A program made the translations under genes and the position numbers. Below the pieces are notes generated by a model. That model worked only from the letters and a program-made list of their open reading frames with translations, did not search any database and was not told where the DNA came from. Shown piece after piece: positions 28,901 through 62,061 of a stretch of 64,000 bases of DNA. The stretch lies in sequence record OR805292.1; one strand, 5' to 3'. Each line of letters begins with the position of its first letter. The first letter of the stretch is position 1.

Positions 28901-31900
28901 ATTATGGGATTATCTAATGTATTTTCAGTATCGTAATAATGCCATATTGAATCAGTTAAATTCTCAAAGTTTTGTAATAGATTATCATCTTGTATTAAAT
29001 AACCATCCGCCTCAAATTTACCGTACCAATCGTTTGTGCGAATGCCGCGCAACTGAAGTCTTTTTTGTCTAGAGTATAGTAGCGGATCGTATATGGTATC
29101 ATTAAATATAGTTTTGTTATCAAATAGTATAGCGTGTTCTGTATCGCTTGTAGAAACACGGAATAAATATATTCCAATTTGGTCGCTTTCGTGAGATACA
29201 GAGATAGTTCTTCTGTCCCTGTCTATAATAGTATCATTAGGCGATATAGCATATCCATTTTGATCTAATATACTATAAACACCATTTGATATTCTTTCTA
29301 CCTTCTCAGGATAACCTTCGTTTACTTCTAATGTAATTTTAGAAGCGCCAGGGGCGACGAATAAAGTGTTATTTGGTGCCCATTGAGTAGTTGCCCAGAA
29401 TAAGAATCCCTTAGCAGAAGTAACCCAATTTAATACTTCTCCTGTAGTTTGGTCTATTTCATTAAATTTCCATCCGTTTAATTCTAAATACTGACCATAT
29501 CCTATTAGGAAATCAAATACATCTTGAGGAGTATCTAATTCACTTCCGTATTCTATTTCGTAGAATTCGCTATAATCACCTTCATTAATATAGTTTACTG
29601 CTATACCGCCAGTTGCAGGAAGTGATTTTAGACGCATCCAGTTATCTTGATTAAATTTTCCCTGTGCTGCAATAACAACGCATTGATAGTAGACTCCGTT
29701 GTACCGAACTACATCTCCGTAATTGTACTGAACATTAGTGTCATAAATTGTGAAATTAGAAGTTGTTCCGCCTACATTTATTGTAGTTCCAGATACTAAT
29801 GTACTTCTAGGAACAACTTTAAATACAGGATTTAATACATCATATCCTCTTACTTCAAATTTTCCATATTCGTTTACACGTATTGCAACACCGCTGAATA
29901 CGTATTCAGTTATAGGTTTGCCGGTGTATACTCTTACATGTATATTTTCGTTAGGTAACAACATGCTAGAATTAGTAGAGCCGCCAGATATACTATCAGC
30001 ATATACGTTCAATGTATCTACATTGGTATATCCTGCAAGTCTATGTGCTAAACAAACATCTAACGAACGTATCTTACTACCGAAATTGTATGTAACATCT
30101 TGTTTACCCATAAAGGACAATCTATCAAACACATATTGTTGATATCCAGAGTTTAACACTACATTTCCATTTACCACTTCGCCATGGGCATATGTGTTAC
30201 TATTAGCAATTCTTGTATATGTAGAACTTGATATATACTGCTTAGCGTTTATGGGTGCTCTTGTGTCGTCAAGTGGATTCCAATATCTTTCACCGAAATC
30301 TGCAGGTTTCATTAAATATAACAATTCTAACTGAACAAATGGCCATTCCGAATTGGTATACCATGCTTCTTCTACAGGACTATTGTCCCCGAATATCCAT
30401 TCGTCTTGAAGTGTTTCTATTTCTTGATTAGAAAGCTGCGGAACTATACCTAACTCCTCTGGTGTTTTTAAATCACCAGAAGCATCCGACGGTATTAGAT
30501 TTGGAACTAATCCAGTTCTTTTATACTTTTCGTGGGTGCCTGCTCTATTGCCACGGCGAATTATACCGTTTTCAATATCAGTCCACATATCAGTATTTTG
30601 TGAAGTATAATCTCCATTATATTCTTCATCCCACCAGGTCGGCTTTTCTACAAACCCTAACATTTCCCATGGTGTTTTATTAGGTGTTAGTGTGTTATAG
30701 TAGTATTTGTATAATCCGCGCCAGGATCCGATAGAATCGTTACTAACTGGACGATAATTCCAGGTTTTCCAGTTTAACGAATTAAATCCAGAATATAATT
30801 TATAATTAAGACTATTCTTTAAACACCATTTTAAGAAATAAGGTTTTACTATTTCATTATATTGTTGCAGAGTATACCCGTTTTCATAAAATTTTGTCGG
30901 TTTTACATCGTCTAATTTAAGTAATAAATTGTAATCTAGTCTAAATTTGTCGGCAATATTGTTATATATTCTTGTTTCGAATTCTAATAATAGATCATCC
31001 CTAATATCGCCGTAGGTGGGTATTTTAGAACCATCATGACCTAAAATTACTTCTGTAGGAGTAACATAACTAGTATCTACAATTATTTTAGGTTGATATA
31101 CAGGATAACATCCTATTTTAGAAGGTGTTGCAGGTATTTTTGCAGAAAGTATGTTATTGTATGTACGAACAATATACGACGTATTCGAAGGTGTACTAGA
31201 CAGCTTAACAACTAAATTATTATTAGAATACGATAGTGTATAGTCTTTATCTATTGTTAATGTATTGTAATCAACAGAAGTGCCAGATCTTCTAAATACA
31301 AGAACAGAAGAATCCATTTTACCTAATATGTTATTAGTCGGTACTAATAATGTATTTCCTGCTGATACGCTAGAGAAATTGTATTCATCATATACATCAC
31401 CCCATGCAGCCATATATGACTGTGTGAAGGCACCATTGTATTCGAATGTACTAGTAACGCGATTTATCACATACGTAAACAATGCATCTATGTTTACTGG
31501 GTTTGTATTTTGATTTAAAGGCGTAGCTATTAATTCTTTTGCATATTTTATGAACTTATCTTTATATCTAGTATACTCGTCGCGTGCAAATCTTATAGCA
31601 GAATTTATATTTAATTCTTCGCTAGAAGATACAAGCATTGTTTTTAACAATGGACTTCTATTTTGTAGAATAAATGTACCTAAAGATTTGTCTTCAGCAG
31701 TATCTCTGTAATTATTATTAGAACTATAAGGATCTCCTTTAAATCCTATTTGATTAGTCATTATACTAACAAAATGGTTTGTTAACTCATTCGACGAGTA
31801 TTCATTTACTTCTAAGTTGTTAGGGTTATTCTCTAATTGTTGTGGAATTTGATAATACCCTAGTGCGTTATCCGGTAAAGCTTCTTTAGAATAGGTGTAT

Positions 31901-34527
31901 GTTTGAATAACATCAGTTGCAGAGAGTGATCTCAATATTTTTATAGTTTTAGTGGGTTTCCCGTCGTTATCTAGGACTATAGTAAATTCCACATTCTGTG
32001 CAAGGGTAGATTTATTGTATTCTACTCTTATGTCAAATACACCCGTTTCCAACTCTTCAGGTGTTACGCTTAGTTCGTATTCTTTTTGCGAAGAATCTGA
32101 TACTACAAATCTATCTATTACTCTTTGTTTAGAATTTCCGTCAAATGGCACCCAAGTATGCTCATATGTGGGATTAGAGCCAGATATTGTATAATTCCAT
32201 TGTTTAAAATAATAATAACCTTTTATTGGTTCAAATTCATTTCCATTGAAGTATTGGAATACATCCATGTGAAGATCGTGTCTAAACACAATATCGGATA
32301 TTTGACCTAAGTTTTTTACTTCAATAGGAAATCCTAGTATTTCGTCGTCGTATGCACTTTCTTCATTTACTTTATACGAAAAAATCTTAGATCCAGCAAA
32401 TGTAGATTGCGGGAAACTATCCAACGAAATTGCATTGTTATTAGAGTCTAAATCAGTATAATATAAATTAAATAAAGGAGCTTGGTTAGCATTTGTTTTT
32501 CTATTATAAGTCCTTTCCCATTGTACTCCACTATAATAGAACATGTCTCCTGCAAATGTATCTCCTTCAGTTACTAATACTACATCTCCTTTAGCAACTT
32601 TTGTATATTTGTTAGGAACAGGGATTATACTGTTTACTACAGTATTGTCTGGTTGTTCTACTTTAACTATTTTCCATATATAGTCTGTTGCATTTAGTGT
32701 AAGAGTTTCGTTATCTCTTACTATTAATTTAACAATACTATCGTCAGGCACTATATTTTTAAATTCTACTAATAGTGCATTATCTTGTTCTATTGTAAAA
32801 CTAACAAAATCATCTGCAGGATTATATAAGTAGTCATACGATACTGGATCATTGTTTGCATCTCTTGTATATGCATCTATTTGAATACCTATTATATGAT
32901 TACCTATATTTTGTTGAGTAAAATTAAAAGTAAAATCATTATTAAATAAAAATGTTCTTCTGGCGCCTGGTCCTTCTATTGCTTCGGCAGCAGGCTTCTT
33001 ATACATGTTTACTTTATTGTTTACATTTATTTCTACTTGGTCACCAGGCAATAACCCATCTATGTTATCATTTATGATTACATCAAATGCTAAATTAGTA
33101 GGTAAGGTAGTTCCTGTAATGGTTACAATGCTATTATTCTTGCCAACCGGTGTATTTAATGTTTCTACATTAAATGTAAACGAAGTTCTTGGCTGTCTTA
33201 TAGATGTTCCTCTGTTAACTACATCTATAGTCTTAATAGTTCCTACGCTAGATGGTGTATAAAATTTATATTCAATGCCATTTGTTATGTTTTCAAAACT
33301 AACATTGTTTATATCATACGAAATAGGATTCCATTGCAATCCTTTTGTGTCTGCAATGAAATTCATTTGGTTTAATTCATCTTCGTACGAATACCATTCG
33401 GGATTGTAAAACATTTTGTTACCACGTTTTACAATTACAAATATATCATCTGTATCAGTAAATGGTTTTCGTAATATTATATTGTATGGTGCTGCATCTG
33501 CAATAAATGTATCTACAATTGGATAAGTTATTGTGCTATTAGATAAGAAAATTAACTTATCTTGATCTTCTAATAGTTTTCCATCAATAGTGTATGATGC
33601 AGAATTTGATATACTAGAAATATTATCAGACTCGGCTACTAGATTAACTTCACCTAAGTAATTATTTCCAGATTTAAATAACTCTATATCTCTATCAAAC
33701 TCTATAATAGGTCTTCTTGCCTTAACTGCGTTGTTATATGTAGATGTATTGGTTGCAGAGGCAGAAGTTGCCATTACAGATTTATGATACCATTTGTTAG
33801 TGCGCGACCAGGCGTTGCCATCTCTGCAGCCACGTTCTATAGTGATATAATCTACCGAACCGACCGTATCTACTAAGTGAGATTCATCTTTTACTAAAAT
33901 AATACCTTTTCCAACACCTTCTACAGTTAATGGTCTATTAAATGAGGACGAGTTAGTATATTGTATTCTAAGTCCGTTAGAAAGCTGAATAGTATTACCG
34001 TTTTCTAATGTTATACTGGCGTTCTTTTTTCCTATTATATTGTTTATTATCCATTCGTCTGCGTTTATACCACTTTCGTTTTCTACTGTTAACATAATAA
34101 CAGGCAGCCGATCTTCTATCCAATAATAATTTTGGAAATTTATAAATTTATCTAAATCTATCGGCGGACCGAAAGAATAATATCCACCAGAAAATAAAGT
34201 GTCATTATTCTTTGTATTGGCACCATAATAATTTAACCTGTTTAACAAGTCTTGGTAAAACATTATATTTGTTTGATCTAACGTAGTAGAATCAATACTA
34301 TACGAGGTTGCTTCTAACTGATACCAAGTCCGTTCTTTAGTAGGTTCTGCTAAGTAATAATCGTTTATAGGATCATGTCTACCAGGAACTCTTCTACCTA
34401 TGTAGGCAGTTATATCCTCTACATTCTTTTTAGAAAATAGTTGTTCAAATGTAGCTAAAAAGAATCTTTTTTGGGTATCTGTTCTAAATATACCAGGTAA
34501 CTTGTTAAACGTTTTTAATGTTGCCAT
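22954..34527 (-). CDS. giant virion structural protein (baseplate wedge, gp7-like position; 3857 aa)
   Basis: 11.6-kb uninterrupted ORF directly downstream of the gp6-like gene. Confidence 0.8.
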   Translation of the reverse strand: MATLKTFNKLPGIFRTDTQKRFFLATFEQLFSKKNVEDITAYIGRRVPGRHDPINDYYLAEPTKERTWYQLEATSYSIDSTTLDQTNIMFYQDLLNRLNYYGANTKNNDTLFSGGYYSFGPPIDLDKFINFQNYYWIEDRLPVIMLTVENESGINADEWIINNIIGKKNASITLENGNTIQLSNGLRIQYTNSSSFNRPLTVEGVGKGIILVKDESHLVDTVGSVDYITIERGCRDGNAWSRTNKWYHKSVMATSASATNTSTYNNAVKARRPIIEFDRDIELFKSGNNYLGEVNLVAESDNISSISNSASYTIDGKLLEDQDKLIFLSNSTITYPIVDTFIADAAPYNIILRKPFTDTDDIFVIVKRGNKMFYNPEWYSYEDELNQMNFIADTKGLQWNPISYDINNVSFENITNGIEYKFYTPSSVGTIKTIDVVNRGTSIRQPRTSFTFNVETLNTPVGKNNSIVTITGTTLPTNLAFDVIINDNIDGLLPGDQVEINVNNKVNMYKKPAAEAIEGPGARRTFLFNNDFTFNFTQQNIGNHIIGIQIDAYTRDANNDPVSYDYLYNPADDFVSFTIEQDNALLVEFKNIVPDDSIVKLIVRDNETLTLNATDYIWKIVKVEQPDNTVVNSIIPVPNKYTKVAKGDVVLVTEGDTFAGDMFYYSGVQWERTYNRKTNANQAPLFNLYYTDLDSNNNAISLDSFPQSTFAGSKIFSYKVNEESAYDDEILGFPIEVKNLGQISDIVFRHDLHMDVFQYFNGNEFEPIKGYYYFKQWNYTISGSNPTYEHTWVPFDGNSKQRVIDRFVVSDSSQKEYELSVTPEELETGVFDIRVEYNKSTLAQNVEFTIVLDNDGKPTKTIKILRSLSATDVIQTYTYSKEALPDNALGYYQIPQQLENNPNNLEVNEYSSNELTNHFVSIMTNQIGFKGDPYSSNNNYRDTAEDKSLGTFILQNRSPLLKTMLVSSSEELNINSAIRFARDEYTRYKDKFIKYAKELIATPLNQNTNPVNIDALFTYVINRVTSTFEYNGAFTQSYMAAWGDVYDEYNFSSVSAGNTLLVPTNNILGKMDSSVLVFRRSGTSVDYNTLTIDKDYTLSYSNNNLVVKLSSTPSNTSYIVRTYNNILSAKIPATPSKIGCYPVYQPKIIVDTSYVTPTEVILGHDGSKIPTYGDIRDDLLLEFETRIYNNIADKFRLDYNLLLKLDDVKPTKFYENGYTLQQYNEIVKPYFLKWCLKNSLNYKLYSGFNSLNWKTWNYRPVSNDSIGSWRGLYKYYYNTLTPNKTPWEMLGFVEKPTWWDEEYNGDYTSQNTDMWTDIENGIIRRGNRAGTHEKYKRTGLVPNLIPSDASGDLKTPEELGIVPQLSNQEIETLQDEWIFGDNSPVEEAWYTNSEWPFVQLELLYLMKPADFGERYWNPLDDTRAPINAKQYISSSTYTRIANSNTYAHGEVVNGNVVLNSGYQQYVFDRLSFMGKQDVTYNFGSKIRSLDVCLAHRLAGYTNVDTLNVYADSISGGSTNSSMLLPNENIHVRVYTGKPITEYVFSGVAIRVNEYGKFEVRGYDVLNPVFKVVPRSTLVSGTTINVGGTTSNFTIYDTNVQYNYGDVVRYNGVYYQCVVIAAQGKFNQDNWMRLKSLPATGGIAVNYINEGDYSEFYEIEYGSELDTPQDVFDFLIGYGQYLELNGWKFNEIDQTTGEVLNWVTSAKGFLFWATTQWAPNNTLFVAPGASKITLEVNEGYPEKVERISNGVYSILDQNGYAISPNDTIIDRDRRTISVSHESDQIGIYLFRVSTSDTEHAILFDNKTIFNDTIYDPLLYSRQKRLQLRGIRTNDWYGKFEADGYLIQDDNLLQNFENLTDSIWHYYDTENTLDNPIIEQTARHLIGFQDREYLNNLRITGDQQYLFYKGMISQKGTKQSVDKLLRSEFIKSNENIQIYEEFAFKLADFGATNSNAQLEVLIDGDLVKSDPQIVELSYPVSYGTGKVSEVRVLSSEMIYTTTPIIVFATPEEANAGLDPNVDAYLQGNQLNSPNNSIVEEIRATGQIVLKNGRIDSVTITEPGYGYIKPPKIAIIYNQTVITIDKLISIIKNKIDEDSPYDMIITIDSDDNERWLSKPNGRMPVIVGNEIKYNDRLVPTTKQLDGNIPTAGYVNTKDVTHQILYPKNIFTLWERKDVSKPSLTSYIWVGNASSVGIDWGVFVISSGLTPATNALYPYCVINNMVYSYTVDSDGVIDAIFDKEGKQVTNVPIQNPLFFKNVRFKNNASVNVTSGKVWIDSINSDNDWAVAVVSGSTITNIRSRQNLVDSRLFENAYFYDKDTKQTIDFLPVYDPVKGLIPGTADRNIHYKSEIDPTTYSVSANSANIDDELAFTDSEVGRLWWDTSTCRYLQYEQPGKLDGSETKEQILEYRRDNWGKLFPGSVINVYEWVSSPFTPDLYNGTGTPKSLTDYVVRYDTNSAGQATPIYYYWVKGKQEIPNNIKSRNMTSTSVENLITNPKSQGYKWFSFIGNNSFVFSNVSKTINGKTPVFQVNYRYTKNINEKHTEWKLLREGDEVSVIPTYLWNRLVDSLVGYNINGDIVPDPTLSEFSKLGIKVRPRQSMIDNRMAARKVFVQNANSLLSTISIKDFNPAWADGLASSVLWRYVNWYADGFNQFNTTPVKQVSTVGELTGLVGKLKDGDIVKLVRPEEFTLYQYSNQNFTLIGRQNSAIQLLPAIYTVSRSYTNDNALRELIFALYNNVFKDANLVMRNLVFFALINYILSEQQNLDWVFKTTYIKVNQEGESLTQQESVTTDPIQSFISYIKEIKPYTTKIRDLGVKYNVPMDIANGTAYDYDSLYDWPDDHEGEQAPFRPIEVPRLFDINSLYDRVQCGYITKPNYIDLGDQTFIGTGGQVVLIANTPNDEFIALDGISQYRLGANKDISRITSVTINGQEIEGYTFTTILNATFIILPSTPDAGDVITVNYTDIKSVWKIKVDGKTITKEQYDVEINENGYLQVTFKSNTLIKIGSKIKLYSGTEFTQTPLEEMRLEYNARQPGKVLKPIFDLAIDPAGKIAGGWGIPKWGQLRWGIPGTIQEGNRQLWTEYLQYSGAAGRYILYQTDLQRDILSAAPINGSYPYSSFTERLYESSAGERDVLFQFNERFGDEYGCDYEGKVIDAKDFEYIFSRPWDSTKWDEYAWDASTATYVITPNYTETSATVISEGKTTFVIRYVVDITGVTLNGSSTQYTATKGSNFTSIEVPSAAEGDEIVFTFNPVTNTFNSDTSKPIIDGAYFEDTNVREGIPEEQALVSPTENMVIIVDSNAKTTEVQYVVTNTDTSNPFVKIVLTEKIVLQDIIGLVINGDPNTEDKLKFNIDNNGINTVVIAYPTSFSAGDIISVVYKDNYTSQTTVANDYRFDTNSVVRDNTQGYITVDLRNTKQNKDINTWDTFAWDPSIDSPENADSVYLLPIDMPTIANPDEVVAQASGQLTYKFVDITANGVDTMIHTGMNILPNRVQGVYSSGVAMYGYTVVVDNSGITPELVINFEIAPSAGTVITVKYQSYSIMKLDDYVSYVMNKYNITSVTTSEYKLQTIDMFVAANKRMISVSNNLYTRKSKEMLYTNTKLFTVDTSIRNFVGETVYINGISKTKDKDYTIEFTNITGDNAKLLVVYKGTLNAGDIIRIDWTETNIQKVTDIVNNSWVAVFNEQHNFINPVTMQGDNVVIKYPAKPLSFRVHLDEMGETHYVRISDYYSTRLAKPLKLTDKSIELVDASAIVDPSSSKPGVVWIGTERIEFLYKRGNKLHGLTRGSLGTSVYTGTNGDTTVPLYTRVFDGSYKQEQEDTGKYIWENNNGGLALSTTPWAIFLQNRPGSGLTP

Positions 34528-34533
34528 TTTTAG

Positions 34534-37500
34534 TTAAATTCTCATATTCATTTCTGTTAAGTTATTTACTATCTCTACATTAGCTACAGTTGCAGTAGAT
34601 ATAAACAATTCATCTGATTCTGCTCTAATTTGGAATAAATTACCAAATTTAGAAGTTTGTTCTATAGGTACTATAACAACCGAACCTATAACTCCCGCTA
34701 GGGTTTGGTGAATGTATGCTGCTAATTCTGTATAATAGAATGATTCACCGAAATCCCAGTTGTTTATGTTGAAATATTCGTCTATTGCAGAAACAACTTT
34801 AGATTTTATTTCGTTATCGGTTAAAGTAGTGGAACCTACTTTAACTACTTTAAATGTACATTTGTATTCTTCTCTTGCTTGCTGGCCAAATAATACTTTA
34901 AATCTAGCAGGCTGGAATACAATTTGGTCCGACAGCATTTTGTATGTACTAAGATCACCAAATTGTATTCTTAGTTCTTCAGTAGTAGGCGATTCGGGGA
35001 AACGTTCGATAGGTAAATTTTGATTTTTCCATTTAAGGATATCGTCATAATACGATTGTGTTAAAGTTACCATATCTACAATATTACTTATACTAGGATC
35101 TATTCTGTTATCCGAAGGAGCATAATGTTTCCATTTATAATGCAACGGATAAAACTGAGAATCCTCGTTCTGTGTATATCCCCTTCCGTTACTAACACTA
35201 TGGTCGTCATCAAACACATATGATAATACAGCATAACTTGCAGTTAATGTCATAAACTGTGCTAATGAAGACGAATTAGCCTTCGCCGCGGTTATACCTG
35301 TTATTTCGTTAATAGTTTGATTATTTCCATTGTTAATGCGTATTGTTTCGAAAATACGACTACCAGGAGAATCTAAATTCTGTGTTACAATATTTATTCC
35401 GTCATTTTCTATGCGTTCTATAAAAATAGTTGTCCCATCAACACTATTGTTACTATTATAATTATCAGAATATATTGCTTCTAATACTTTAGTCCTTAGC
35501 AATGATTTAAAAGATGATTCTGCTGCACTTGCAATTAAAACTAAGTCCCTTGCAACAACATCATTATAATTAAAATCTAAACTATTAGGATTCTGTTGTC
35601 GAAGATCTAACCAAGATGCTTGCCATAATCTATTATATTCATACCCGTCGTAATCTGTAGTTTTTTCGTGAAAAACTAAATCCGTAGGTGAAACAAATTG
35701 TTCGAAAATAAAAGTATTATCTGGTATACCGTCTCTATCTCTGTCTGCAGGAACTACTACTATTTTTCTGGGATCACTATATCCGTCAGATTCTATAAAT
35801 GTTTGGAAAGAATTCCAGACAATAGAATTACCCAACTGGCCTTGATTAGAATAAAATATTCGTATAATATCGTTAACTTGTTGCCCTACGTATTCTGCAT
35901 CTAAAACGCCAGCAGATGCAGCTCCAGTTGGCAATGCACCCGGTAATAGTATGCCGTTTTGCCAGTACTGAATTTCTTTAGGTAAAGTATCTCTGTATTT
36001 TAAAATTATTTTGTTGTCAGGATATGTTAAACTAACTATACCATTAACCAAACGCCATTGACCGTTTCCGATAAACTGCCAATTTTCTACTATAGTAGGA
36101 CCTGTGTTAATTCCTAGTATTTCTATTTCATCTCGTTGTGCAGAACCAGTGTTTATATCAAATTCGGTTTCGTCAGTATCGTAGTAAAATTCTACAGTAC
36201 CGTTTGTTTCAAATATAAACTTTGTTCCTCTCGATAAAAATGTATAATTATCTGTTTCAGTAGAATATGTTAAAACAAGCATCCAGTCTTTTCTAACTGC
36301 AGGTTGAGATAAAGATAAATCGAATTCAAAATTATCTAAATTTGTAGTAGGTACGCCTAATACAATAAACCACGAACCTTCTGGATCTACATCTATATCG
36401 TACTTTAAACCAAATTCATTTCTTCTAAATAGTTGATTTGCTATATCTGTAGTTTCTTCTGTATCAAACGTTGTTTTATATCTAGGATATACACTATCTA
36501 CATACCAATTGGCCGGAATTTCTATATCAAATACAAACAAACTTGCGTTTAATCTAGTTGCAATAAACTCATTATCTGTAGTTGCATCCCCTTGTGACAC
36601 CGGGTTAGTAATACTTTTAACGGTTACTTCTTTATATTCTGTACCGTTTGTAAATTTAATTTTAGATCCGACAGAAAGGAATCTAAATTCCCCTTCTGGT
36701 CTATTATTATAATTCGTAGGATATATATAGTTGGTAGATCCTTTAACTAAGTATCCTGTATTAGTTGCATCAGACGACGGATACGTTACCCACCTTGCTT
36801 GAGTAGAAGTGTATCTAAATATATTAGGAACTCCAGGGCGAACAATGGAGGTATTTATGGGGTTAGGAGTTGGGTTTTGTCTATATCTTATATACTCACT
36901 TAGGTAATTATTCCAATAAAAGTTGATTAAATCTTGATTTCTGATAAATGTCTGTAAATTATTTCTAACTACTATATTTTCGCTAACTAATTTATCACCC
37001 ATTGCTACTGTAGTAGAAGGCACAGTACTCTGATTGTATATAGAACCATCTTCGCCGAAAATATTTAAATTTTGATGAAATCCAGTTGGATCGTTAATAT
37101 CTATGTATCTAGAATGTCCAGAATGAGTTCTATTGATAGCATGAACTTTTGCAATAGAACTACCCTGCGTTAACGGGAAAACATTATAATCCTCGTTGTT
37201 TACCATTCTATCTTGGGTATAGTATACTTGAGGTGCTCTGGTTTTTATCTCATCGTTTGTTTCTGTAGGCGAAGAATTAGATATAGTTTGTTCTAAACTA
37301 AAAATTAATCTAAGGTCATATTGTTGAGAATCTGCACCTATATACGGTATTACTAATTCCATTCCGGATGCTTCTTCCGGGCGTAAAGTAAAAGTAGTGT
37401 TAGATGAAACTCTATACCATACTCTAAATGTACCTGTAGGAATAGTACCGAAATTTCCATCAGAGAATTTAACAGAAATTTGATCATTAACTCTAGAAAC

Positions 37501-38493
37501 TACTTCAAATATATTTCTTATACCTAAGTTAATACTATTATAAATTATATTTGTTCCGCCAGAAACGTTAGGTACCTTAGTCCATTTTTCTTCAACAGTT
37601 CCGATTTCGTTAATCTCTTGGACCCACACATCGGTTTCGTTTATATTTCTATCATTTATATCTATAATTCTATTTTGAACAGGGAAATCGAATGCAAAAT
37701 CTTTAAATGCAAGAGTACCCTGTTTAAATTGTAAAAAGAAACCTGTGTTTGCAGAATCTAGCCCTTGGCCATCGTTCCTGTATATAACATGAAACGCATC
37801 GTCTGGATCGGGTTGTCTTTCCGTAAATGTTTCGTCAAAATCTGAGTTAACTACTTCAAACGGTAGGGCTACATTATTAACAACTATCGGTATAGGAAAT
37901 GCAACGTTTACCCTTTTTACGTTGTTTAATTGATATAAGCTAGTAGGTATATTACCTACTGTTCCACTTTTAAATGGTCTACCAAATGGATTAGTAGAAG
38001 CGAATGCCGCATTTAATATAGTTATAAACTTGTCATAACTATCTATATCATTGGGATCATTCCAAAATACAGTTCTATTATTTAAATTCCTTTCTTGAGA
38101 ATCTGTAACTGGTTCTGACGTTTGCACACCTATTAATTTAAATAATCCTTTAGCAGGTATATTTCGTTTAGGTTGATAGTTTATCATTCTAGCTAAACGT
38201 ATAATGCTATCCCTACGCTCAGCAGTATCCATAAAGTTTTCTCTAGAATTTAAATCCATTCTAAATGCAAGGCTAGTTCCTAGATATGCAAGCAATTCTA
38301 TAATAGCAATAAATTCAGAGCTTTCTATGTAGTCATTAAAATCTTCAGGATAATGAATTTGAACATAATTAACTAACGCAGTCTTTAAGGAATCAAAATC
38401 ATATGCTTTGAAATCGACGTCCTTGAAACTTTTATATATTTTTCTATAATCTTCCGCTGCGAACAGATTAGATTGTCTTACGTCTTGTGACAT
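34534..38493 (-). CDS. gp6: baseplate wedge subunit, T4 gp6-like (1319 aa)
   Basis: YDFDSLK..L..Y, DFNDYIESS, LAFR.D...RE.F..TA and DR.V...DY motifs; adjacent to gp25. Confidence 0.85.
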   Translation of the reverse strand: MSQDVRQSNLFAAEDYRKIYKSFKDVDFKAYDFDSLKTALVNYVQIHYPEDFNDYIESSEFIAIIELLAYLGTSLAFRMDLNSRENFMDTAERRDSIIRLARMINYQPKRNIPAKGLFKLIGVQTSEPVTDSQERNLNNRTVFWNDPNDIDSYDKFITILNAAFASTNPFGRPFKSGTVGNIPTSLYQLNNVKRVNVAFPIPIVVNNVALPFEVVNSDFDETFTERQPDPDDAFHVIYRNDGQGLDSANTGFFLQFKQGTLAFKDFAFDFPVQNRIIDINDRNINETDVWVQEINEIGTVEEKWTKVPNVSGGTNIIYNSINLGIRNIFEVVSRVNDQISVKFSDGNFGTIPTGTFRVWYRVSSNTTFTLRPEEASGMELVIPYIGADSQQYDLRLIFSLEQTISNSSPTETNDEIKTRAPQVYYTQDRMVNNEDYNVFPLTQGSSIAKVHAINRTHSGHSRYIDINDPTGFHQNLNIFGEDGSIYNQSTVPSTTVAMGDKLVSENIVVRNNLQTFIRNQDLINFYWNNYLSEYIRYRQNPTPNPINTSIVRPGVPNIFRYTSTQARWVTYPSSDATNTGYLVKGSTNYIYPTNYNNRPEGEFRFLSVGSKIKFTNGTEYKEVTVKSITNPVSQGDATTDNEFIATRLNASLFVFDIEIPANWYVDSVYPRYKTTFDTEETTDIANQLFRRNEFGLKYDIDVDPEGSWFIVLGVPTTNLDNFEFDLSLSQPAVRKDWMLVLTYSTETDNYTFLSRGTKFIFETNGTVEFYYDTDETEFDINTGSAQRDEIEILGINTGPTIVENWQFIGNGQWRLVNGIVSLTYPDNKIILKYRDTLPKEIQYWQNGILLPGALPTGAASAGVLDAEYVGQQVNDIIRIFYSNQGQLGNSIVWNSFQTFIESDGYSDPRKIVVVPADRDRDGIPDNTFIFEQFVSPTDLVFHEKTTDYDGYEYNRLWQASWLDLRQQNPNSLDFNYNDVVARDLVLIASAAESSFKSLLRTKVLEAIYSDNYNSNNSVDGTTIFIERIENDGINIVTQNLDSPGSRIFETIRINNGNNQTINEITGITAAKANSSSLAQFMTLTASYAVLSYVFDDDHSVSNGRGYTQNEDSQFYPLHYKWKHYAPSDNRIDPSISNIVDMVTLTQSYYDDILKWKNQNLPIERFPESPTTEELRIQFGDLSTYKMLSDQIVFQPARFKVLFGQQAREEYKCTFKVVKVGSTTLTDNEIKSKVVSAIDEYFNINNWDFGESFYYTELAAYIHQTLAGVIGSVVIVPIEQTSKFGNLFQIRAESDELFISTATVANVEIVNNLTEMNMRI

Positions 38494-50507: not shown

Positions 50508-50960
50508 ATGAACGATTACACACATTACACAGAGGAAGATTTCATATTTTTAGCATATGATTTAAATACTCAGCTTATAAATGATGGATATCCTGACGCT
50601 GCTGTAAAATTTATTACTAATCAGTTTATTTTAGAGCATAGACATCCTGACGAAATAAAACGTTGTATAGGATGTAATTCTAAAATGTACGAAGATGTTA
50701 TTGCTACTAAGAGAAATTTATCTGGTAAATCGCATTGCAGACATTGCGAATCGAAACTTAGTATGTATAAGGAAGTTGTTAAGGAAGTAGCAAATACAAC
50801 ACAAATACTTCGCATACCAGAAAAACATTTAAATTCAGTTAAACGATTAATTAGAATATATAATGAGCAAAACAAAACTAGTGCATATCAGAGTATATTA
50901 GTTAAAACAAAGAAACTTAACACAGGAGTTTCTAAAAAGTCAAAAAGAAAGGGACGTTAA
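50508..50960 (+). CDS. zinc-ribbon (CxxC..CxxC) protein with RHH-like segment and basic tail (150 aa)
   Basis: CIGC and CRHC; TTQILRIPEKHLNSVKRLI; KKSKRKGR tail; late motif at 50468. Confidence 0.75.
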   Translation: MNDYTHYTEEDFIFLAYDLNTQLINDGYPDAAVKFITNQFILEHRHPDEIKRCIGCNSKMYEDVIATKRNLSGKSHCRHCESKLSMYKEVVKEVANTTQILRIPEKHLNSVKRLIRIYNEQNKTSAYQSILVKTKKLNTGVSKKSKRKGR

Positions 50961-50976
50961 TTGTCCCTTTCTTTTT
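50942..50976. terminator. bidirectional terminator
   Basis: AAAAAGAAAGGGAC-GTTAATT-GTCCCTTTCTTTTT. Confidence 0.9.
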
Positions 50977-51202
50977 ATAGGAAGCTTCTACCTGTTTCTG
51001 CTTCAATTTTTTGTTTAATAAATTCTCCTAAACGTACCCGCTCTTGATATGATAACGACCAAGCAGTGTGCCAGTCAAACCCATTAATTTTATCACATAT
51101 TTGGACTATTTCGCCTTCTAATCCCAGTGATTCTTGTTCATATTCTTGTATAACGTTCCTAATATCATCTGGGGTTCCCGATACTAGGATTCTCTGAAAA
51201 AA
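50975..51202 (-). CDS. -1 frameshift extension (gp51/T-like, 75 aa) of the gp26-like gene
   Basis: Open frame with no ATG/GTG/TTG; it begins at slippery T TTT TTC (51196-51202); sequence GFDWHTAWSLSYQERVRLGEFIKQKIE. Confidence 0.8.
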   Translation of the reverse strand, partial: FFQRILVSGTPDDIRNVIQEYEQESLGLEGEIVQICDKINGFDWHTAWSLSYQERVRLGEFIKQKIEAETGRSFL

Positions 51203-52038
51203 CTTACTGGGTTAAAATCTACAGGTACTACAAAACTTTTATTACAGTTGTCACATACTGCATCAAAGTCGCCATTAACTCCTACTTGATTTATTTCTTT
51301 TAAAAGACTATCTATTTTATTAACATCTGCTCTATCTATATTTGCTATAAATTCTTTTATATCGGCTAGTGTCTGAGCAGTATTGTTAACTATATCTATA
51401 CCGTTAGTTTCATCTACAATACGAACTATTGTTTTTGCAATTAATTCAAAATTTAATGTTGACAGTTCATTTATTGTATTAGAAAATGCAGAAAGTTTTT
51501 CTTCATCTGAATACATATCGCTTTGCATTATTCTAATAAATTTTGCTTGTTCTAGTGCAGTTTTTGCAACTGTCATATTATCTGAAAAATCATATGGTCT
51601 AATAAATATAGATAGACCGTTATCAAGGTTCACGACGTATTGGTCTTCTAAATAAGTGGATGTATTAATGACATTTAATAAGTCTATTCCATATAAATTT
51701 TTATGATTACAATGCGGGCACGTAGAAGAAATATCTATTGTGTTACCGTATGATGCTGCTTTTATAGCAACACATATCATATGAATGTCATTAATCAAGA
51801 GTTTATTTACATCTTTAATTCCTGGTACACAACTCTTAATTACTTCTTTTAAGCCTTCACCGTTCACTAATGCATCAGGATTTTTTATTAATACTTCATC
51901 TTTTCCTGTCATAGCATATACCCCTAGTTCTCCGGAATCGGTGTATTCTACAACATTTGATGGATAAAATGAATTTCCGCTGGGCAAACGAATATAAGAT
52001 TTGAATGTTCTGTAATATTGATGTAATTTGTTGCTCAT
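51184..52038 (-). CDS. gp26: baseplate hub assembly / tail-assembly chaperone, T4 gp26-like (284 aa)
   Basis: LPS.G..Y, MTGKDE..IKNPD.L.NG and CPHC..CDNC motifs; divergent from tape measure. Confidence 0.8.
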   Translation of the reverse strand: MSNKLHQYYRTFKSYIRLPSGNSFYPSNVVEYTDSGELGVYAMTGKDEVLIKNPDALVNGEGLKEVIKSCVPGIKDVNKLLINDIHMICVAIKAASYGNTIDISSTCPHCNHKNLYGIDLLNVINTSTYLEDQYVVNLDNGLSIFIRPYDFSDNMTVAKTALEQAKFIRIMQSDMYSDEEKLSAFSNTINELSTLNFELIAKTIVRIVDETNGIDIVNNTAQTLADIKEFIANIDRADVNKIDSLLKEINQVGVNGDFDAVCDNCNKSFVVPVDFNPVSFFRES

Positions 52039-52107: not shown

Positions 52108-54504
52108 GTGGCAGAAGATATTAGAATTGTTGGCGTTGATCCTAGTGTCCCCGGCTGGGCTAGAGAAGAAACTCTTAATAAAATAGTATCTGAGTTAAAA
52201 AAACTCAATGGATCTAATACAAGAGAAAACGACGAACTAAAAGATGCAGTAGATGAATTAGTTAGGGTCACCCGTAGAACTAGCGAAGATACATCTAGAA
52301 CAGATAATAACACTGAAATAAAAGAAGCATTAAACAGATTATCTTCTTCGTTAAAACAACAGAAAAAATCTGATAATTCTTTATCTGCAAAGCAAGGGGG
52401 AAACAAACCTCCCGTATTGCCGACTGACAATAAGAAATCTAAATTAGATACAGATACTATAGGCGCATTTATTACTGCCGTCGGTACTGCTTCAAAGGCA
52501 GTAGCAAAATTTACTTTAAGTATGGCATCTTTTGCAGTTGGTGGAAGTATATACGCTGCATTAAAGCAAGCTGCATCGTCTCAGCTTACTTTATCTAGAG
52601 ATTTATATAAATCAGGTTGGAACTTCGGAACGGTATTAGACGATGCATCTGGTATTATTAAATCTACTAACTTAGACGGTATTTCGTATGCCATAAAAGG
52701 TTTAGGTATAAATTCATCTGCACTATCTGAAGTATTAAAAGGCAATGAATTAGCAATACAAAAATACGGAATAAAATCGTTTGTAGATCTGTCTTCTAGC
52801 TTAAAAAGACAAGGCAATAGCTTAGGTATGTCTTTAAAAGAAACAGCAGATTATGTAGGAGAATATTTAGAATCTCAACGTTTAATGGGCACATTTGATA
52901 AAATGCGCCAAGTAAACATGACTGCCCTTGCATCTAAAGCACTTAAAGATACCCAAGCATTTGCTACTGCGTTAAGAATGTCTACAGAAGACCTTCAGGC
53001 AAAAATGAATGAAAGTTTAAAAGATGTAGACTTTCGTGTAGCAATAGAATCAGTTAACGCAAATTCTAAAGAAGCCGCTGCCCAAATTTATGCTGCTTTG
53101 CCGGAACAATTGCAAACTATGTTTAAGGTAGCTCTTAAAGATACTCCGTCTTTTATGGCATCTAAAGAATACGCCGATTTGATAAAATCTGGACAAGGAG
53201 AATTAGCTAGACAAATAATTGCAGTATCATCTGGACTGAAGTCTGGTAATATAACTAACGGTCAGGCAGATGATGCAATGAAACGACTTATAAAATCTAC
53301 TAGTTTTGCAGAAAGTACAATGCGTAGACTTGCTATGCTAGATGCTCGTGGACTAATAGATAGTAATGTTGCCGCTGCCGCATATGGATTAAAAGACCTT
53401 AGAGATAAAATGGATGGTCATTATGAAGGAATCCAAAATACAGAAGCTACAAATTTAGCAAAAGTTGAAGATGTAAGAAATAGAGCATTAGCTGTATTAG
53501 ATACGTTTGTATCATCTATAATGAGAGCAGGATTCGAATCTAGTGAATTTGCTAAATTATTAGATAATGCAAATGAAATGTTAAAAACAATTCATAATAC
53601 AGCAGAAGACTTAGGTAAACAACTAGGTCCGGAATTATTTAAATTTGTTAACAATGCTATGGAATATCTAAATGGTTTATTTAGTAAAGATGTAGCAGGA
53701 AATATAAATGTAAATTATTCTAAAATAATAGGAGATATTTTAACAAGTTCTGGTGCTGCTATAGTAGTTGGCGTTCTTGCTATTATGACTACATTTAAAG
53801 GTGTTGTTATTTCTTCGTTATCGTCGTGGCTTAAAGGTGCATCGGGACCTATGTCATCATTAGGTGGCACAGTAAAAACTATAGCAGGAAGATTAGGATC
53901 ATTTGCAGCACTAGCAGTATCGTTTACGAATGGAATAGGTAGATTAAGTCAATCAATTTCGGACGGCGGCGATGCAATAGAATCTGCATTAAATTTTTTA
54001 TCAGGCGCAGGCGAAGGTATAATAGATCCTGTGTTCAAATCCCTTACATGGGCAGCTAACAAATTAGGTATAGTATCTGATGAAGCAGCAGATGGATTTA
54101 GTAAATACATCAGTGATACTAATTTGCAACAGTTCTTGGGTCTACAAGATATACCTATAAAAGTAGAAACTACTAATAAACCTGCATATACACCGCCTGG
54201 ACCTACTGCTACTAAAACATCTGCATACGGTAAAATAGAAACTCCGAAAGCTCCTGCTATAATCCCTACAGCTCAGCCAGATGTAGCAGACGCAGCAAAA
54301 CAAAGTCCTACTCCTGTAGATCCTACTAGCAATATAAAGCCTATAGAAAATACAGGAATGAGTTCTCAAGACATGCTAAATAGAAGTACAGATAAACTTA
54401 TACGTTTACAAGAAGAACAAATACGACAGTTACAAGAGCTTGTAGATATTCAGCGCAGAGCATTAGCTGCTACTAGAGAAACTGGATTTACAAGAACTAG
54501 GTAA
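52108..54504 (+). CDS. tape-measure-like protein (798 aa)
   Basis: Ala/Ser/Gly-rich helical composition, amphipathic/hydrophobic segments, adjacent to the chaperone gene. Confidence 0.7.
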   Translation: MAEDIRIVGVDPSVPGWAREETLNKIVSELKKLNGSNTRENDELKDAVDELVRVTRRTSEDTSRTDNNTEIKEALNRLSSSLKQQKKSDNSLSAKQGGNKPPVLPTDNKKSKLDTDTIGAFITAVGTASKAVAKFTLSMASFAVGGSIYAALKQAASSQLTLSRDLYKSGWNFGTVLDDASGIIKSTNLDGISYAIKGLGINSSALSEVLKGNELAIQKYGIKSFVDLSSSLKRQGNSLGMSLKETADYVGEYLESQRLMGTFDKMRQVNMTALASKALKDTQAFATALRMSTEDLQAKMNESLKDVDFRVAIESVNANSKEAAAQIYAALPEQLQTMFKVALKDTPSFMASKEYADLIKSGQGELARQIIAVSSGLKSGNITNGQADDAMKRLIKSTSFAESTMRRLAMLDARGLIDSNVAAAAYGLKDLRDKMDGHYEGIQNTEATNLAKVEDVRNRALAVLDTFVSSIMRAGFESSEFAKLLDNANEMLKTIHNTAEDLGKQLGPELFKFVNNAMEYLNGLFSKDVAGNINVNYSKIIGDILTSSGAAIVVGVLAIMTTFKGVVISSLSSWLKGASGPMSSLGGTVKTIAGRLGSFAALAVSFTNGIGRLSQSISDGGDAIESALNFLSGAGEGIIDPVFKSLTWAANKLGIVSDEAADGFSKYISDTNLQQFLGLQDIPIKVETTNKPAYTPPGPTATKTSAYGKIETPKAPAIIPTAQPDVADAAKQSPTPVDPTSNIKPIENTGMSSQDMLNRSTDKLIRLQEEQIRQLQELVDIQRRALAATRETGFTRTR

Positions 54505-60483: not shown

Positions 60484-62061
60484 ATGTCAGACTTAATAAT
60501 ACAAATAAAAGAATTGATAAAAAGTAAACCAAAGCATTTCAGTGTTTTGATTAAAAAAGATTTAAAATTAGCAGAATTTGTAGAGCAACACTGCACTAAT
60601 CCCTATAATACTGTGTATGCTGCTAAAGTGTATACTGCTATAACCGGCGAAAAAGAAGAATGCAAATACGGAAACACAAAAAAATTTAATTCAATAAATG
60701 ACGGGTTTAGATTTTGTGGTACTGCATCCTCGTGCAAGTGTTGTAAAGAAAGTGTATCTAATAACTTAGTGCAATCAAAAAAGATAGAAAATAAAGAAAT
60801 ATCAAAGAAAAAGCGTGAAAAAACTAATCTAAAAAAATACGGAGTATCAAATACTGGGCAATCTGCTATTGCTCTACAAAATCATGCAAAATTTTACGAA
60901 AATAAACAAAATGTAGACAAAGTAACGTCTAAGATAAAGCACACTAAGTCAATAAAATACGGTAACAAAAATTTTAATGGTAATAAATGGTATTCTAAAA
61001 TATCGGAAAAACTAAAAGAAAATAATTTATCTTTTACTATACAAGAACATGAATATAAAGGTATGGCAGAAACATATTGCATAAAATGTGGAACCTGTAA
61101 TACCACTTTTATGTCTAAGGTTAGATATAGTAGTATACCGACTTGTGCAATATGTATGCCAGAATTGACAGTATGTAATTCAACACAAGAACAAGAATTA
61201 TTTAATTTTATAAGACAACATTATTCTGGAGAAATAATAACTGGATCTAGAAAAATATTAGATTCTGGAAAAAGTTTAGATATATACCTCCCTGAAAAAA
61301 ATCTTGCAATAGAATATAATGGGCTTTATTGGCATGTAATGGATAACGATCGTTTACCGCACATAACCAAAACGTATCACTATGACAAATATATAGGATG
61401 TAAAGAAAAGGGAATATCGTTAATTACTATATATGGACATTTGTATAACTCTAAAAAAACTATAATAGAAAACAGATTACTTCATAAATTAGGCTATACA
61501 CAAGAGACGGTATATGCTAGAAAATGTATTATTAAAGATGTGCCTTCTGCAGAAGAAAAAGAATTTTTGAATAAAACGCATATACAAGGTTATGTTCCGT
61601 CATCTATAAAATACGGATTGTATTTTAATGATGTATTAGTTGCATTAATGAGTTTTATAAAGTCATCTAACAGAAACATTTCGGGAAATAACAGATACGA
61701 CTACGAATTGCTTAGATATGCAACATCTTGTTCGGTACTAGGCGGCGCATCTAAATTGTTTTCTCATTTTGTAAAGAATAATATTCCTAATTCTATAGTT
61801 TCATATTCACAAAATGAATGGAATACAGGCAATGTTTACCGTATATTAGGGTTCAAACAAGAACCTAAAATAAACATAGGATATTGGTATGTAAGTCCGG
61901 ATTTTTGTAAAGTATATCATAGGACTAATTATACTAAAAAGAAATTAATAGAACATGGTTTTAATTCAAATAAATCAGAACACCAGATAATGGAAGAGCG
62001 TGGATTCAGACGACTATATGACTGTGGTAATACCAAATGGGTGTGGGAAAACAAAATATAA
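60484..62061 (+). CDS. free-standing Hef/Vsr-like putative homing endonuclease with C-terminal GNAT-like domain (525 aa)
   Basis: KTNLKKYGV..., LDIY.PE.NLAIEYNGLYWH, EL.RYA....V.GGASKL and YDCG..KW motifs. Confidence 0.8.
   Translation: MSDLIIQIKELIKSKPKHFSVLIKKDLKLAEFVEQHCTNPYNTVYAAKVYTAITGEKEECKYGNTKKFNSINDGFRFCGTASSCKCCKESVSNNLVQSKKIENKEISKKKREKTNLKKYGVSNTGQSAIALQNHAKFYENKQNVDKVTSKIKHTKSIKYGNKNFNGNKWYSKISEKLKENNLSFTIQEHEYKGMAETYCIKCGTCNTTFMSKVRYSSIPTCAICMPELTVCNSTQEQELFNFIRQHYSGEIITGSRKILDSGKSLDIYLPEKNLAIEYNGLYWHVMDNDRLPHITKTYHYDKYIGCKEKGISLITIYGHLYNSKKTIIENRLLHKLGYTQETVYARKCIIKDVPSAEEKEFLNKTHIQGYVPSSIKYGLYFNDVLVALMSFIKSSNRNISGNNRYDYELLRYATSCSVLGGASKLFSHFVKNNIPNSIVSYSQNEWNTGNVYRILGFKQEPKINIGYWYVSPDFCKVYHRTNYTKKKLIEHGFNSNKSEHQIMEERGFRRLYDCGNTKWVWENKI

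Follow-up and report, generated by a model that had tools for sequence, protein, structure and literature searches.

Probable programmed −1 frameshift in the gp26-like gene of Pseudomonas phage Cassandra and its relation to T4 gp26 and gp51

A 64,000-nucleotide stretch of sequence record OR805292.1, here called the window, carries on its minus strand a gene for a gp26-like baseplate hub protein (51184..52038). This gene very probably yields a second, longer protein through a programmed −1 ribosomal frameshift close to its 3′ end, and the two products would be the counterparts of gp26 and gp51 of phage T4. Sequence comparison establishes the frameshift signals and how widely they are conserved, shows that the −1 frame is under purifying selection and identifies T4 gp26 and gp51 as paralogs. 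Frameshifting in the gp26 family would be an addition to the known class of tail-chaperone frameshifts, and the T4 gp26/gp51 pair appears to be this class resolved into two genes.

Predicted frameshift site and −1 open reading frame in Cassandra

The locus was 100% identical to Pseudomonas phage Cassandra (OR805292.1), a PA5oct-like jumbo phage with a 288-kb genome. PA5oct and nine other Wroclawvirus jumbo phages were 98.8–99% identical to Cassandra across the region. In the 0 frame, the gp26-like gene encodes 284 amino acids (aa), the predicted short product, and ends with TAG at 51186..51184. The protein matched PF12322 (T4_baseplate) with E 3e-25 and phrog_150 ('baseplate hub') with E 5e-23, and the family profile was matched over its full length. 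It contained two zinc-ribbon-like Cys pairs, and its AlphaFold2 (AF2) model was confident, with a predicted local distance difference test score (pLDDT) of 90.5 and a predicted template modelling score (pTM) of 0.85. Sequence searches gave no PDB relative, and the family scans added to PF12322 and phrog_150 only a weak match to phrog_15960 (E 0.01). Wroclawvirus records label the gene 'baseplate hub', as in OR805292.1, 'baseplate protein' or hypothetical.

The minus-strand 3′ end of the open reading frame (ORF) reads AGT TTT TTC AGA GAA TCC TAG. A first-pass annotation, made from the sequence alone, had placed a slippery heptamer here, and T TTT TTC (51202..51196, minus strand) was indeed found in X XXY YYZ phase of the 0 frame, 9 nucleotides (nt) before the stop. 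It is followed on the same strand by the 6-nt spacer AGAGAA (51195..51190) and a stem-loop (51157..51189) with a 13-nt loop and 10 base pairs (bp), one of them G-U. The arms of the stem are at 51189..51180 and 51166..51157, and the 0-frame stop codon lies inside the 5′ arm. Spacer and stem agreed with the earlier description, and the stem-loop was the minimum free energy (MFE) structure in ViennaRNA, with −13.8 kcal/mol and z = −3.2; 2 of 200 shuffles folded equally well. A pseudoknot between the loop sequence CCCAG and a downstream CTGGG (51123..51173, minus strand) had also been suggested. Both motifs exist, CTGGG beginning 29 nt past the stem, but the pairing was not beyond chance, because 10.6% of shuffles of the downstream 60 nt gave an equivalent 5-nt complement of the loop. 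No Rfam family was found at gathering score.

The −1 ORF (50975..51211, minus strand) comprises 78 sense codons and a TAA stop (50977..50975). It is closed upstream by another TAA (51214..51212) and contains no ATG, GTG or TTG, as had been noted. Its length had been given as 75 codons; the count was 78 sense codons in total and 73 after the shift site. These 73 codons (50978..51196, minus strand) would form the C-terminal extension of a long product of ~281 + 73 residues. A single-sequence AF2 model of the extension was all-helical with four helices (pLDDT 64). The extension had no significant match in Pfam, NCBIfam or PDB sequences and none in PHROG. The ~210 bases from the 0-frame stop to the terminator carried no minus-strand annotation in the Wroclawvirus records inspected; in the PAC2 record, the sole entry in this stretch was a 43-aa ORF on the opposite strand (51066..51197, plus strand).

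The −1 ORF was said to stop at a bidirectional terminator, and its stop codon does lie within an intrinsic terminator hairpin with A-run and T-run flanks (50941..50977, both strands). On the minus strand, this hairpin (50977..50941) begins at the −1 ORF stop codon and was the only terminator-like hairpin; none was found between the 0-frame stop and 50977. The transcript would therefore span the entire −1 ORF.

The chance occurrence of such an arrangement was checked with every in-phase heptamer of the whole 288-kb genome. In total, 525 in-phase heptamers of any kind were counted, with T TTT TTC accounting for just four. The −1 frame stayed open after an in-phase heptamer for a median of 5 codons (95th percentile 29), compared with 73 codons here. 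The gp26-like gene was the only one in which a near-stop heptamer was followed by a long start-less −1 ORF. In two other combinations of a heptamer with a long −1 ORF, the ORF was an ordinary gene that overlaps its neighbour and has its own ATG.

Conservation of the heptamer and the −1 ORF

Relatives with 30–43% identity were represented by 80 IMG/VR loci, 79 of which were readable through the stop. An in-phase heptamer was located 0–18 nt before the stop in 78 of these 79 loci, as T TTT TTC or, in one clade, A AAT TTT. Past the stop, the −1 frame was open for 69–91 codons, three loci being cut by contig ends, and the +1 frame for ~8 codons. Across all relatives, −1 ORF lengths ranged from 56 to 91 codons. 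After clustering below 60% identity, 31 of 34 clusters held T TTT TTC, two held A AAT TTT and one, L020, lacked a canonical heptamer. The joint probability of the NNT TTT TTY encoding, calculated from local codon usage, was ~10^-11.7. In an ungapped alignment of 58 sites with a mean column identity of 59%, the seven heptamer columns were invariant, plus one other column. A second set, the cyanophage clade, had the heptamer 3 nt before the stop in 80 of 80 loci, with −1 ORFs of 58–61 codons. Conservation of the heptamer in homologs, which had been named beforehand as a check, thus held in both sets.

The closest outgroup, L190 (56% identical), had its heptamer just as far from the stop. Its extension also comprised 73 codons, of which 40 were identical to those of Cassandra, and no start codon occurred before codon 47. 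A stem of equal energy was found at the corresponding position, with one pair altered by a compensatory change. L190 shared the terminator arrangement as well and had an 800-aa divergent neighbour.

The same layout was present in the cultured jumbo phages Atu_ph07, Ecwhy_1 (121Q type), RaK2, XacN1 and RsoM2USA. Heptamer and −1 ORF were also found in P-SSM2, Melnitz, OLIVR6, PhiW-14, RL2RES, the Aeromonas Straboviridae phage AsFcp_1 and further IMG/VR contigs, and they were present in every cultured non-T4-type lineage checked. Altogether, the arrangement was found in >170 independent loci of many families. By these comparisons, the conservation of the heptamer and the −1 ORF is far beyond chance.

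At E ≤ 1e-3, the PF12322/gp26-like family comprised 3,514 clusters (50% identity). A Phe-Phe pair at the C-terminus, a few residues ahead of the stop, is near-invariant. In the best 150 of the 3,514 clusters, the profile ended at most ~10 residues from the protein end; in-frame extensions of the domain are thus missing from this part of the family.

Candidate stimulatory structures and the probable nature of the slip

At 43 of 69 distinct loci, the predicted fold of the 50 nt downstream of the heptamer was stronger than that of 95% of the control windows taken from the gene concerned. Hairpins supported by covariation were clade-specific and started 3–6 nt past the heptamer. In a clade of 19 loci, the hairpin was 83% paired, compared with 33–50% in slid controls, and showed 15 compensatory cells, which was matched by 0 of 500 shuffles. 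The A AAT TTT clade (L004–L015, IMG/VR) had a strong 11-bp hairpin 5 nt downstream with compensatory changes in four pairs. A hairpin 5 nt downstream was also found in the cyanophage clade, with a mean MFE of −13.2 versus −5.9 kcal/mol and 34 of 38 cases in the lowest 5%.

Slippage of the RNA polymerase would lead to protein products identical to those of a ribosomal slip. One U would be added in the T-run, and a minority of mRNAs would carry the extension in frame, read by a ribosome that does not slip. The site is a run of six T, or seven in Melnitz, XacN1 and RsoM2USA, and the hairpin downstream is not notable in every lineage, both of which would suit such a process. However, the T-run is always held in X XXY YYZ codon phase and an entire clade uses A AAT TTT, with five T only. 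In 31 of 31 clusters the heptamer has C at position 7 despite TTT being the preferred Phe codon (0.68), and the run is thereby held short. The hairpins lie at a spacing typical of ribosomal stimulators and show covariation. Taken together, the phase-locked heptamer, the clade with A AAT TTT, the preference for C at position 7 and the covarying hairpins with their spacing favour tandem −1 slippage of the ribosome over polymerase stuttering, which we consider unlikely. T-run heptamers are proven shift sites in P2 E/E+E′ (PMC3091744).

Coding capacity of the −1 frame

The extensions from all clades aligned with one another. Column entropy in the cyanophage clade was 0.18, 0.06 and 0.46 for the three codon positions of the −1 frame, and the periodicity of variation followed the 0 frame as far as the heptamer, changed precisely there and followed the −1 frame beyond it; the heptamer columns themselves had zero entropy. 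A similar change was seen among the closest phages. Upstream of the heptamer, 14 of 17 differences between PAC2 and Cassandra and 10 of 12 between PA5oct and Cassandra fell on 0-frame third positions; past the heptamer, −1-frame third positions held all differences (3/3 for each phage). These codon patterns indicate that the −1 ORF is under purifying selection.

Alternatively, the downstream ORF could be a separate small protein, the 'gp51' of cyanophage annotations, which would be made unfused by translational coupling or by re-initiation at a canonical or non-canonical start. In P-SSM2, Melnitz, OLIVR6, PhiW-14, Ecwhy_1, Atu_ph07, XacN1 and RL2RES, it has been called as a coding sequence (CDS) of its own from an internal ATG, and phrog_634 and phrog_18291 were built from such calls. 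Against this, the Cassandra ORF lacks any ATG, GTG or TTG and that of L190 has no start for more than half of its length. Homologs with an independent start and no slippery site had been named in advance as the refuting pattern, and this pattern was not borne out: an ATG within the first ten codons occurred in 5 of 70 distinct −1 ORFs, and in just 2 of 70 did this stretch hold any start codon that follows a Shine-Dalgarno-like motif. Conservation starts at the heptamer rather than at the ATGs chosen by annotators, T4-type phages have this tail covalently joined to a gp26-like domain, and a search of 5.8 billion proteins did not recover the extension as a called protein. Judged from these data, independent initiation of the −1 ORF is unlikely, and a separate, unfused protein is even less probable than slippage of the polymerase. 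That the stretch past the stop is a decaying remnant or an assembly error, or that the true gene is the plus-strand ORF 51066..51197 of PAC2, would fit the missing annotation in most records and the 43-aa entry of PAC2, but such a non-functional reading is already contradicted by the data at hand: the same arrangement recurs in >170 independent loci, selection acts in the minus-strand −1 frame, 11 independently sequenced isolates are identical save for −1-frame third-position changes, and the cultured-phage records come from many laboratories, which argues against an artefact of assembly software.

Relation to T4 gp26 and gp51

T4 encodes gp26 and gp51 as separate genes (OL964735.1), as had been stated. 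Gene 26 (208 aa) is directly followed by gene 25, and gene 51 (249 aa) is divergent. The Phe-Phe of T4 gp26 is encoded by TTC TTT; therefore, T4 gene 26 has no slippery site. Residues 1–201 of T4 gp51 matched PF12322 with E 7.7e-55, and its match to phrog_150 ran the full length of the profile; the ~55 C-terminal positions covered in this way are missing from the 284-aa protein of Cassandra. The two T4 proteins are paralogs with 20% identity. The last ~50 residues of T4 gp51 matched phrog_634, 'baseplate hub assembly catalyst'. This profile was also matched by the −1 ORFs of P-SSM2, Melnitz, OLIVR6, PhiW-14 and AsFcp_1 (E 1e-28 to 5e-5), and the gp51 C-termini of five Straboviridae genera aligned with those −1 ORFs starting just past the heptamer. 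The −1 ORFs of P-SSM2, Melnitz and OLIVR6 are annotated as 'gp51' or baseplate hub assembly (catalyst). In five T4-type phages of five genera (T4, Stupor, FL20, MP1 and 60AhydR15PP), a separate gp51 was present and the heptamer absent. A BLAST search returned gp51-type genes in 1,380 phage records; the hosts listed were mainly enterobacteria, Acinetobacter and Aeromonas. Since T4 gp51 consists of a PF12322 domain and a tail homologous to the −1 ORFs, it is the in-frame equivalent of the predicted long product, with gp26 as the equivalent of the short product.

The N-domains of the jumbo type and of the T4/cyanophage type are clearly homologous by profile comparison (hhalign 98.2% probability, E 2.8e-14). 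A six-frame hidden Markov model (HMM) search of the whole Cassandra genome recovered one PF12322 gene (E 3e-110), with the next match at E > 0.1, and found the extension domain once (E 6.6e-20). Given a single PF12322 gene and a single extension domain, a gp51-like protein would be obtainable in Cassandra by recoding only.

The first-pass annotation had regarded the extension as gp51-like and had proposed a profile comparison with gp51. A link to the gp51 tail was obtained, but the extension does not correspond to the whole of gp51, since gp51 comprises the PF12322 domain and the tail. The link emerged only via PHROG profiles and a larger alignment; a profile of the extension did not match the single sequences of T4 gp51 and gp25. 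The two extension types, that of the jumbo phages and that of gp51, are probably homologous, with their position supporting this assignment.

Relative to gene 26, gene 25 of T4 (L086:7316), L092, L173 and L175 is in the −1 frame and occupies the place that the extension has in other lineages. The ATG of T4 gene 25 overlaps the stop codon of gene 26. Gene 25 has its own ATG and showed no similarity to the extension (hhalign 0.2%).

On balance, we favour a frameshift in the gp26 gene as the ancestral and near-universal state of T4-related phages, from which T4 and its close relatives would depart as an exception by duplication into gp26 and gp51. This scenario spans Kyanoviridae, Pootjesviridae, Aeh1-type Straboviridae and jumbo phages of the RaK2, 121Q and PA5oct types. 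If true, gp26 and gp51 would be the long-missing G/GT equivalents of T4 and would provide a natural example of a programmed frameshift resolved into two genes.

Observations against a frameshift in the gp26 family

Several observations weigh against the frameshift reading or parts of it. L020 (3300–3560) has kept a −1 ORF of 70 codons, but its site is TCT TTT TCT and the canonical heptamer is absent. The Phe-Phe residues are partly conserved at the protein level, T4 gp26 included, and therefore part of the T-richness is not owed to the slip site. RNAalifold found no structure common to 58 relatives, and in several other lineages a notable hairpin was not found, as is also reported for P2 (PMC3091744). 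The match between the jumbo-type extension and the gp51-type tail was moderate only (hhalign 74%, E 2.8e-5, 31 columns), the other T4-like −1 ORFs being those that matched phrog_634. The Cassandra extension had no match to phrog_634, and an HMM of one alignment (A4) did not detect the jumbo-type extension. The omics paper on PA5oct makes no mention of a frameshift in the gp26 gene. Finally, the gp26-like gene is not demonstrably adjacent to a tape-measure gene.

L020 may rely on single-tRNA slippage or another mechanism.

Genomic neighbourhood

The gp26-like gene is flanked by a divergent gene for a 798-aa virion protein, a portal gene and a convergent ORF of unknown function. The 798-aa protein (52108..54504, plus strand) was detected as a virion protein by electrospray ionisation tandem mass spectrometry (ESI-MS/MS) in PA5oct; the PA5oct record carries this note for the 798-aa neighbour and none for the gp26-like protein. 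It is a candidate tape-measure protein, as a lead only: the syntenic gene of RaK2 is annotated as similar to tail tape measure protein, and searches gave no family matches and no homologs outside the genus. By a crude count, a divergent large ORF stands beside the gp26-like gene in 20 of 80 loci. The tube genes are ~45 kb from the gp26-like gene, and the location between tube and tape-measure genes that characterises the tail-chaperone class was not found. If the 798-aa neighbour were the tape measure, the classic layout of a chaperone gene beside the tape-measure gene would be restored.

The convergent ORF (50508..50960, plus strand) encodes 150 aa without family matches and shares the bidirectional terminator with the gp26-like transcript. 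Elsewhere in the window, a giant ORF of 3,857 aa (22954..34527, minus strand) is located directly downstream of a baseplate wedge protein of 1,319 aa (34534..38493, minus strand; phrog_10646). Homing-endonuclease ORFs stand beside or inside core genes (60484..62061, plus strand; Cassandra_0110-0112, 0005/0007 and 0514-0516 of OR805292.1). One of them follows the major head gene, and the annotations of DNA polymerase, a UvsX-like recombinase and the tail tube are each split into several pieces by ORFs of this kind. Outside the window, Cassandra encodes a homolog of ribosomal protein S21 (Cassandra_0054, OR805292.1 42165..42371), which could influence translation or recoding during infection.

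Proposed mechanism and comparison with known systems

We infer the ribosomal nature of the shift, its efficiency and the chaperone mechanism from the features described above. Most ribosomes would terminate at the TAG codon and release the 284-aa short form. Some would slip back by one base on T TTT TTC, assisted in the Cassandra lineage by the stem-loop 6 nt downstream, and would read 73 further codons in the −1 frame, giving a long form of ~354 aa with a small helical C-terminal domain. Cassandra, the cyanophages and most other T4-related lineages would make both forms from one gene by recoding, whereas in T4-type Straboviridae the short and long counterparts are two paralogous genes. If the two forms act like lambda G/GT and P2 E/E+E′, the N-domain common to both would attach to the hub or tape-measure complex during assembly, the rare extension would supply a second contact, and both forms would depart before the virion is completed.

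The gpG/gpGT pair of lambda is the model of a −1 frameshift conserved in long-tailed phages (Levin 1993 and Xu 2004, via PMC5009743), with a shared domain that binds the tape measure and a rare extension that recruits the tube protein (PMC5009743). The G/GT-style reading put forward in the first-pass annotation was supported by the heptamer, the start-less −1 ORF, the conserved stem-loop and the link to gp51. In both systems, two products, predicted ones in the case of Cassandra, have a common N-terminus, the stop is preceded within a few codons by an X XXY YYZ heptamer, the −1 ORF lacks its own start and the arrangement is kept while the sequences diverge. The counterpart T4 gp51 is absent from virions and acts in tail or hub assembly, in which it would also resemble G/GT. 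Unlike in lambda, the gp26-like protein showed no similarity to the gpG or Phage_TAC families in sequence scans, the weak phrog_15960 match being the only hint. Its N-domain comprises ~280 aa with a zinc-ribbon-like Cys4 motif, compared with ~140 aa for gpG, and the extension in the gp26 family holds just 56–90 aa. The gene is not situated between the tail tube and tape-measure genes, and some lineages of the gp26 family have a covarying stem-loop after the heptamer, in which they also differ from lambda.

P2 E/E+E′ resembles the Cassandra arrangement in being a T-run heptamer (TTTTTTG; PMC3091744) with a short −1 extension in a contractile-tailed phage. A hairpin appears to be unneeded in many lineages of the gp26 family, as in P2, and the heptamer of RL2RES is exactly T TTT TTG. 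In contrast, the protein families are unrelated by sequence, and P2 E has 91 aa and is encoded between the tube and tape-measure genes. The N-domain of Cassandra belongs to PF12322, as do both T4 proteins, and the C-terminal tail of gp51 has its homologs in the −1 ORFs of T4-related lineages. T4 differs in having two divergently transcribed paralogous genes and no slippery site, where Cassandra would use one gene and recoding and has no second paralog. Cyanophages such as P-SSM2 have the same locus layout with a 'gp26' and a small 'gp51' CDS, but their records treat the small ORF as an independent gene with an internal ATG, unlike the reading proposed here for Cassandra.

Leiman et al. (PMC3004832) count gp26 as well as gp51 of T4 among the hub assembly chaperones and state that gp51 is required yet absent from particles. 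In the record of the Acinetobacter phage Stupor (L092, MN662249.1), gp26 and gp51 are both named 'tape measure protein assembly chaperone', and this view of their function is thus already taken by some annotators; no source for this label was found in the searchable literature.

Significance

A mark for ribosomal slippage was present in none of the GenBank records inspected, and a 2016 review of recoding mentions neither T4-like phages nor cyanophages nor baseplates. No description of a frameshift in gp26 was found in the literature searchable without subscription, although one may exist elsewhere. Conserved frameshifting of tail chaperones is a hallmark of long-tailed phages, and none was found described for T4 or its relatives. 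The present analysis would place the gp26 family in that class and would explain the presence of two paralogous 'hub assembly chaperones' in T4. In a family of ~3,500 protein clusters, the long product would be mis-annotated or omitted in the records of many lineages. Studies of recoding would also gain a defined set of natural, sequence-diverse cassettes for −1 frameshifting, some with a stimulatory hairpin and some lacking one. What gp26 and gp51 each contribute to the assembly of hub and tape measure would likewise become directly testable.

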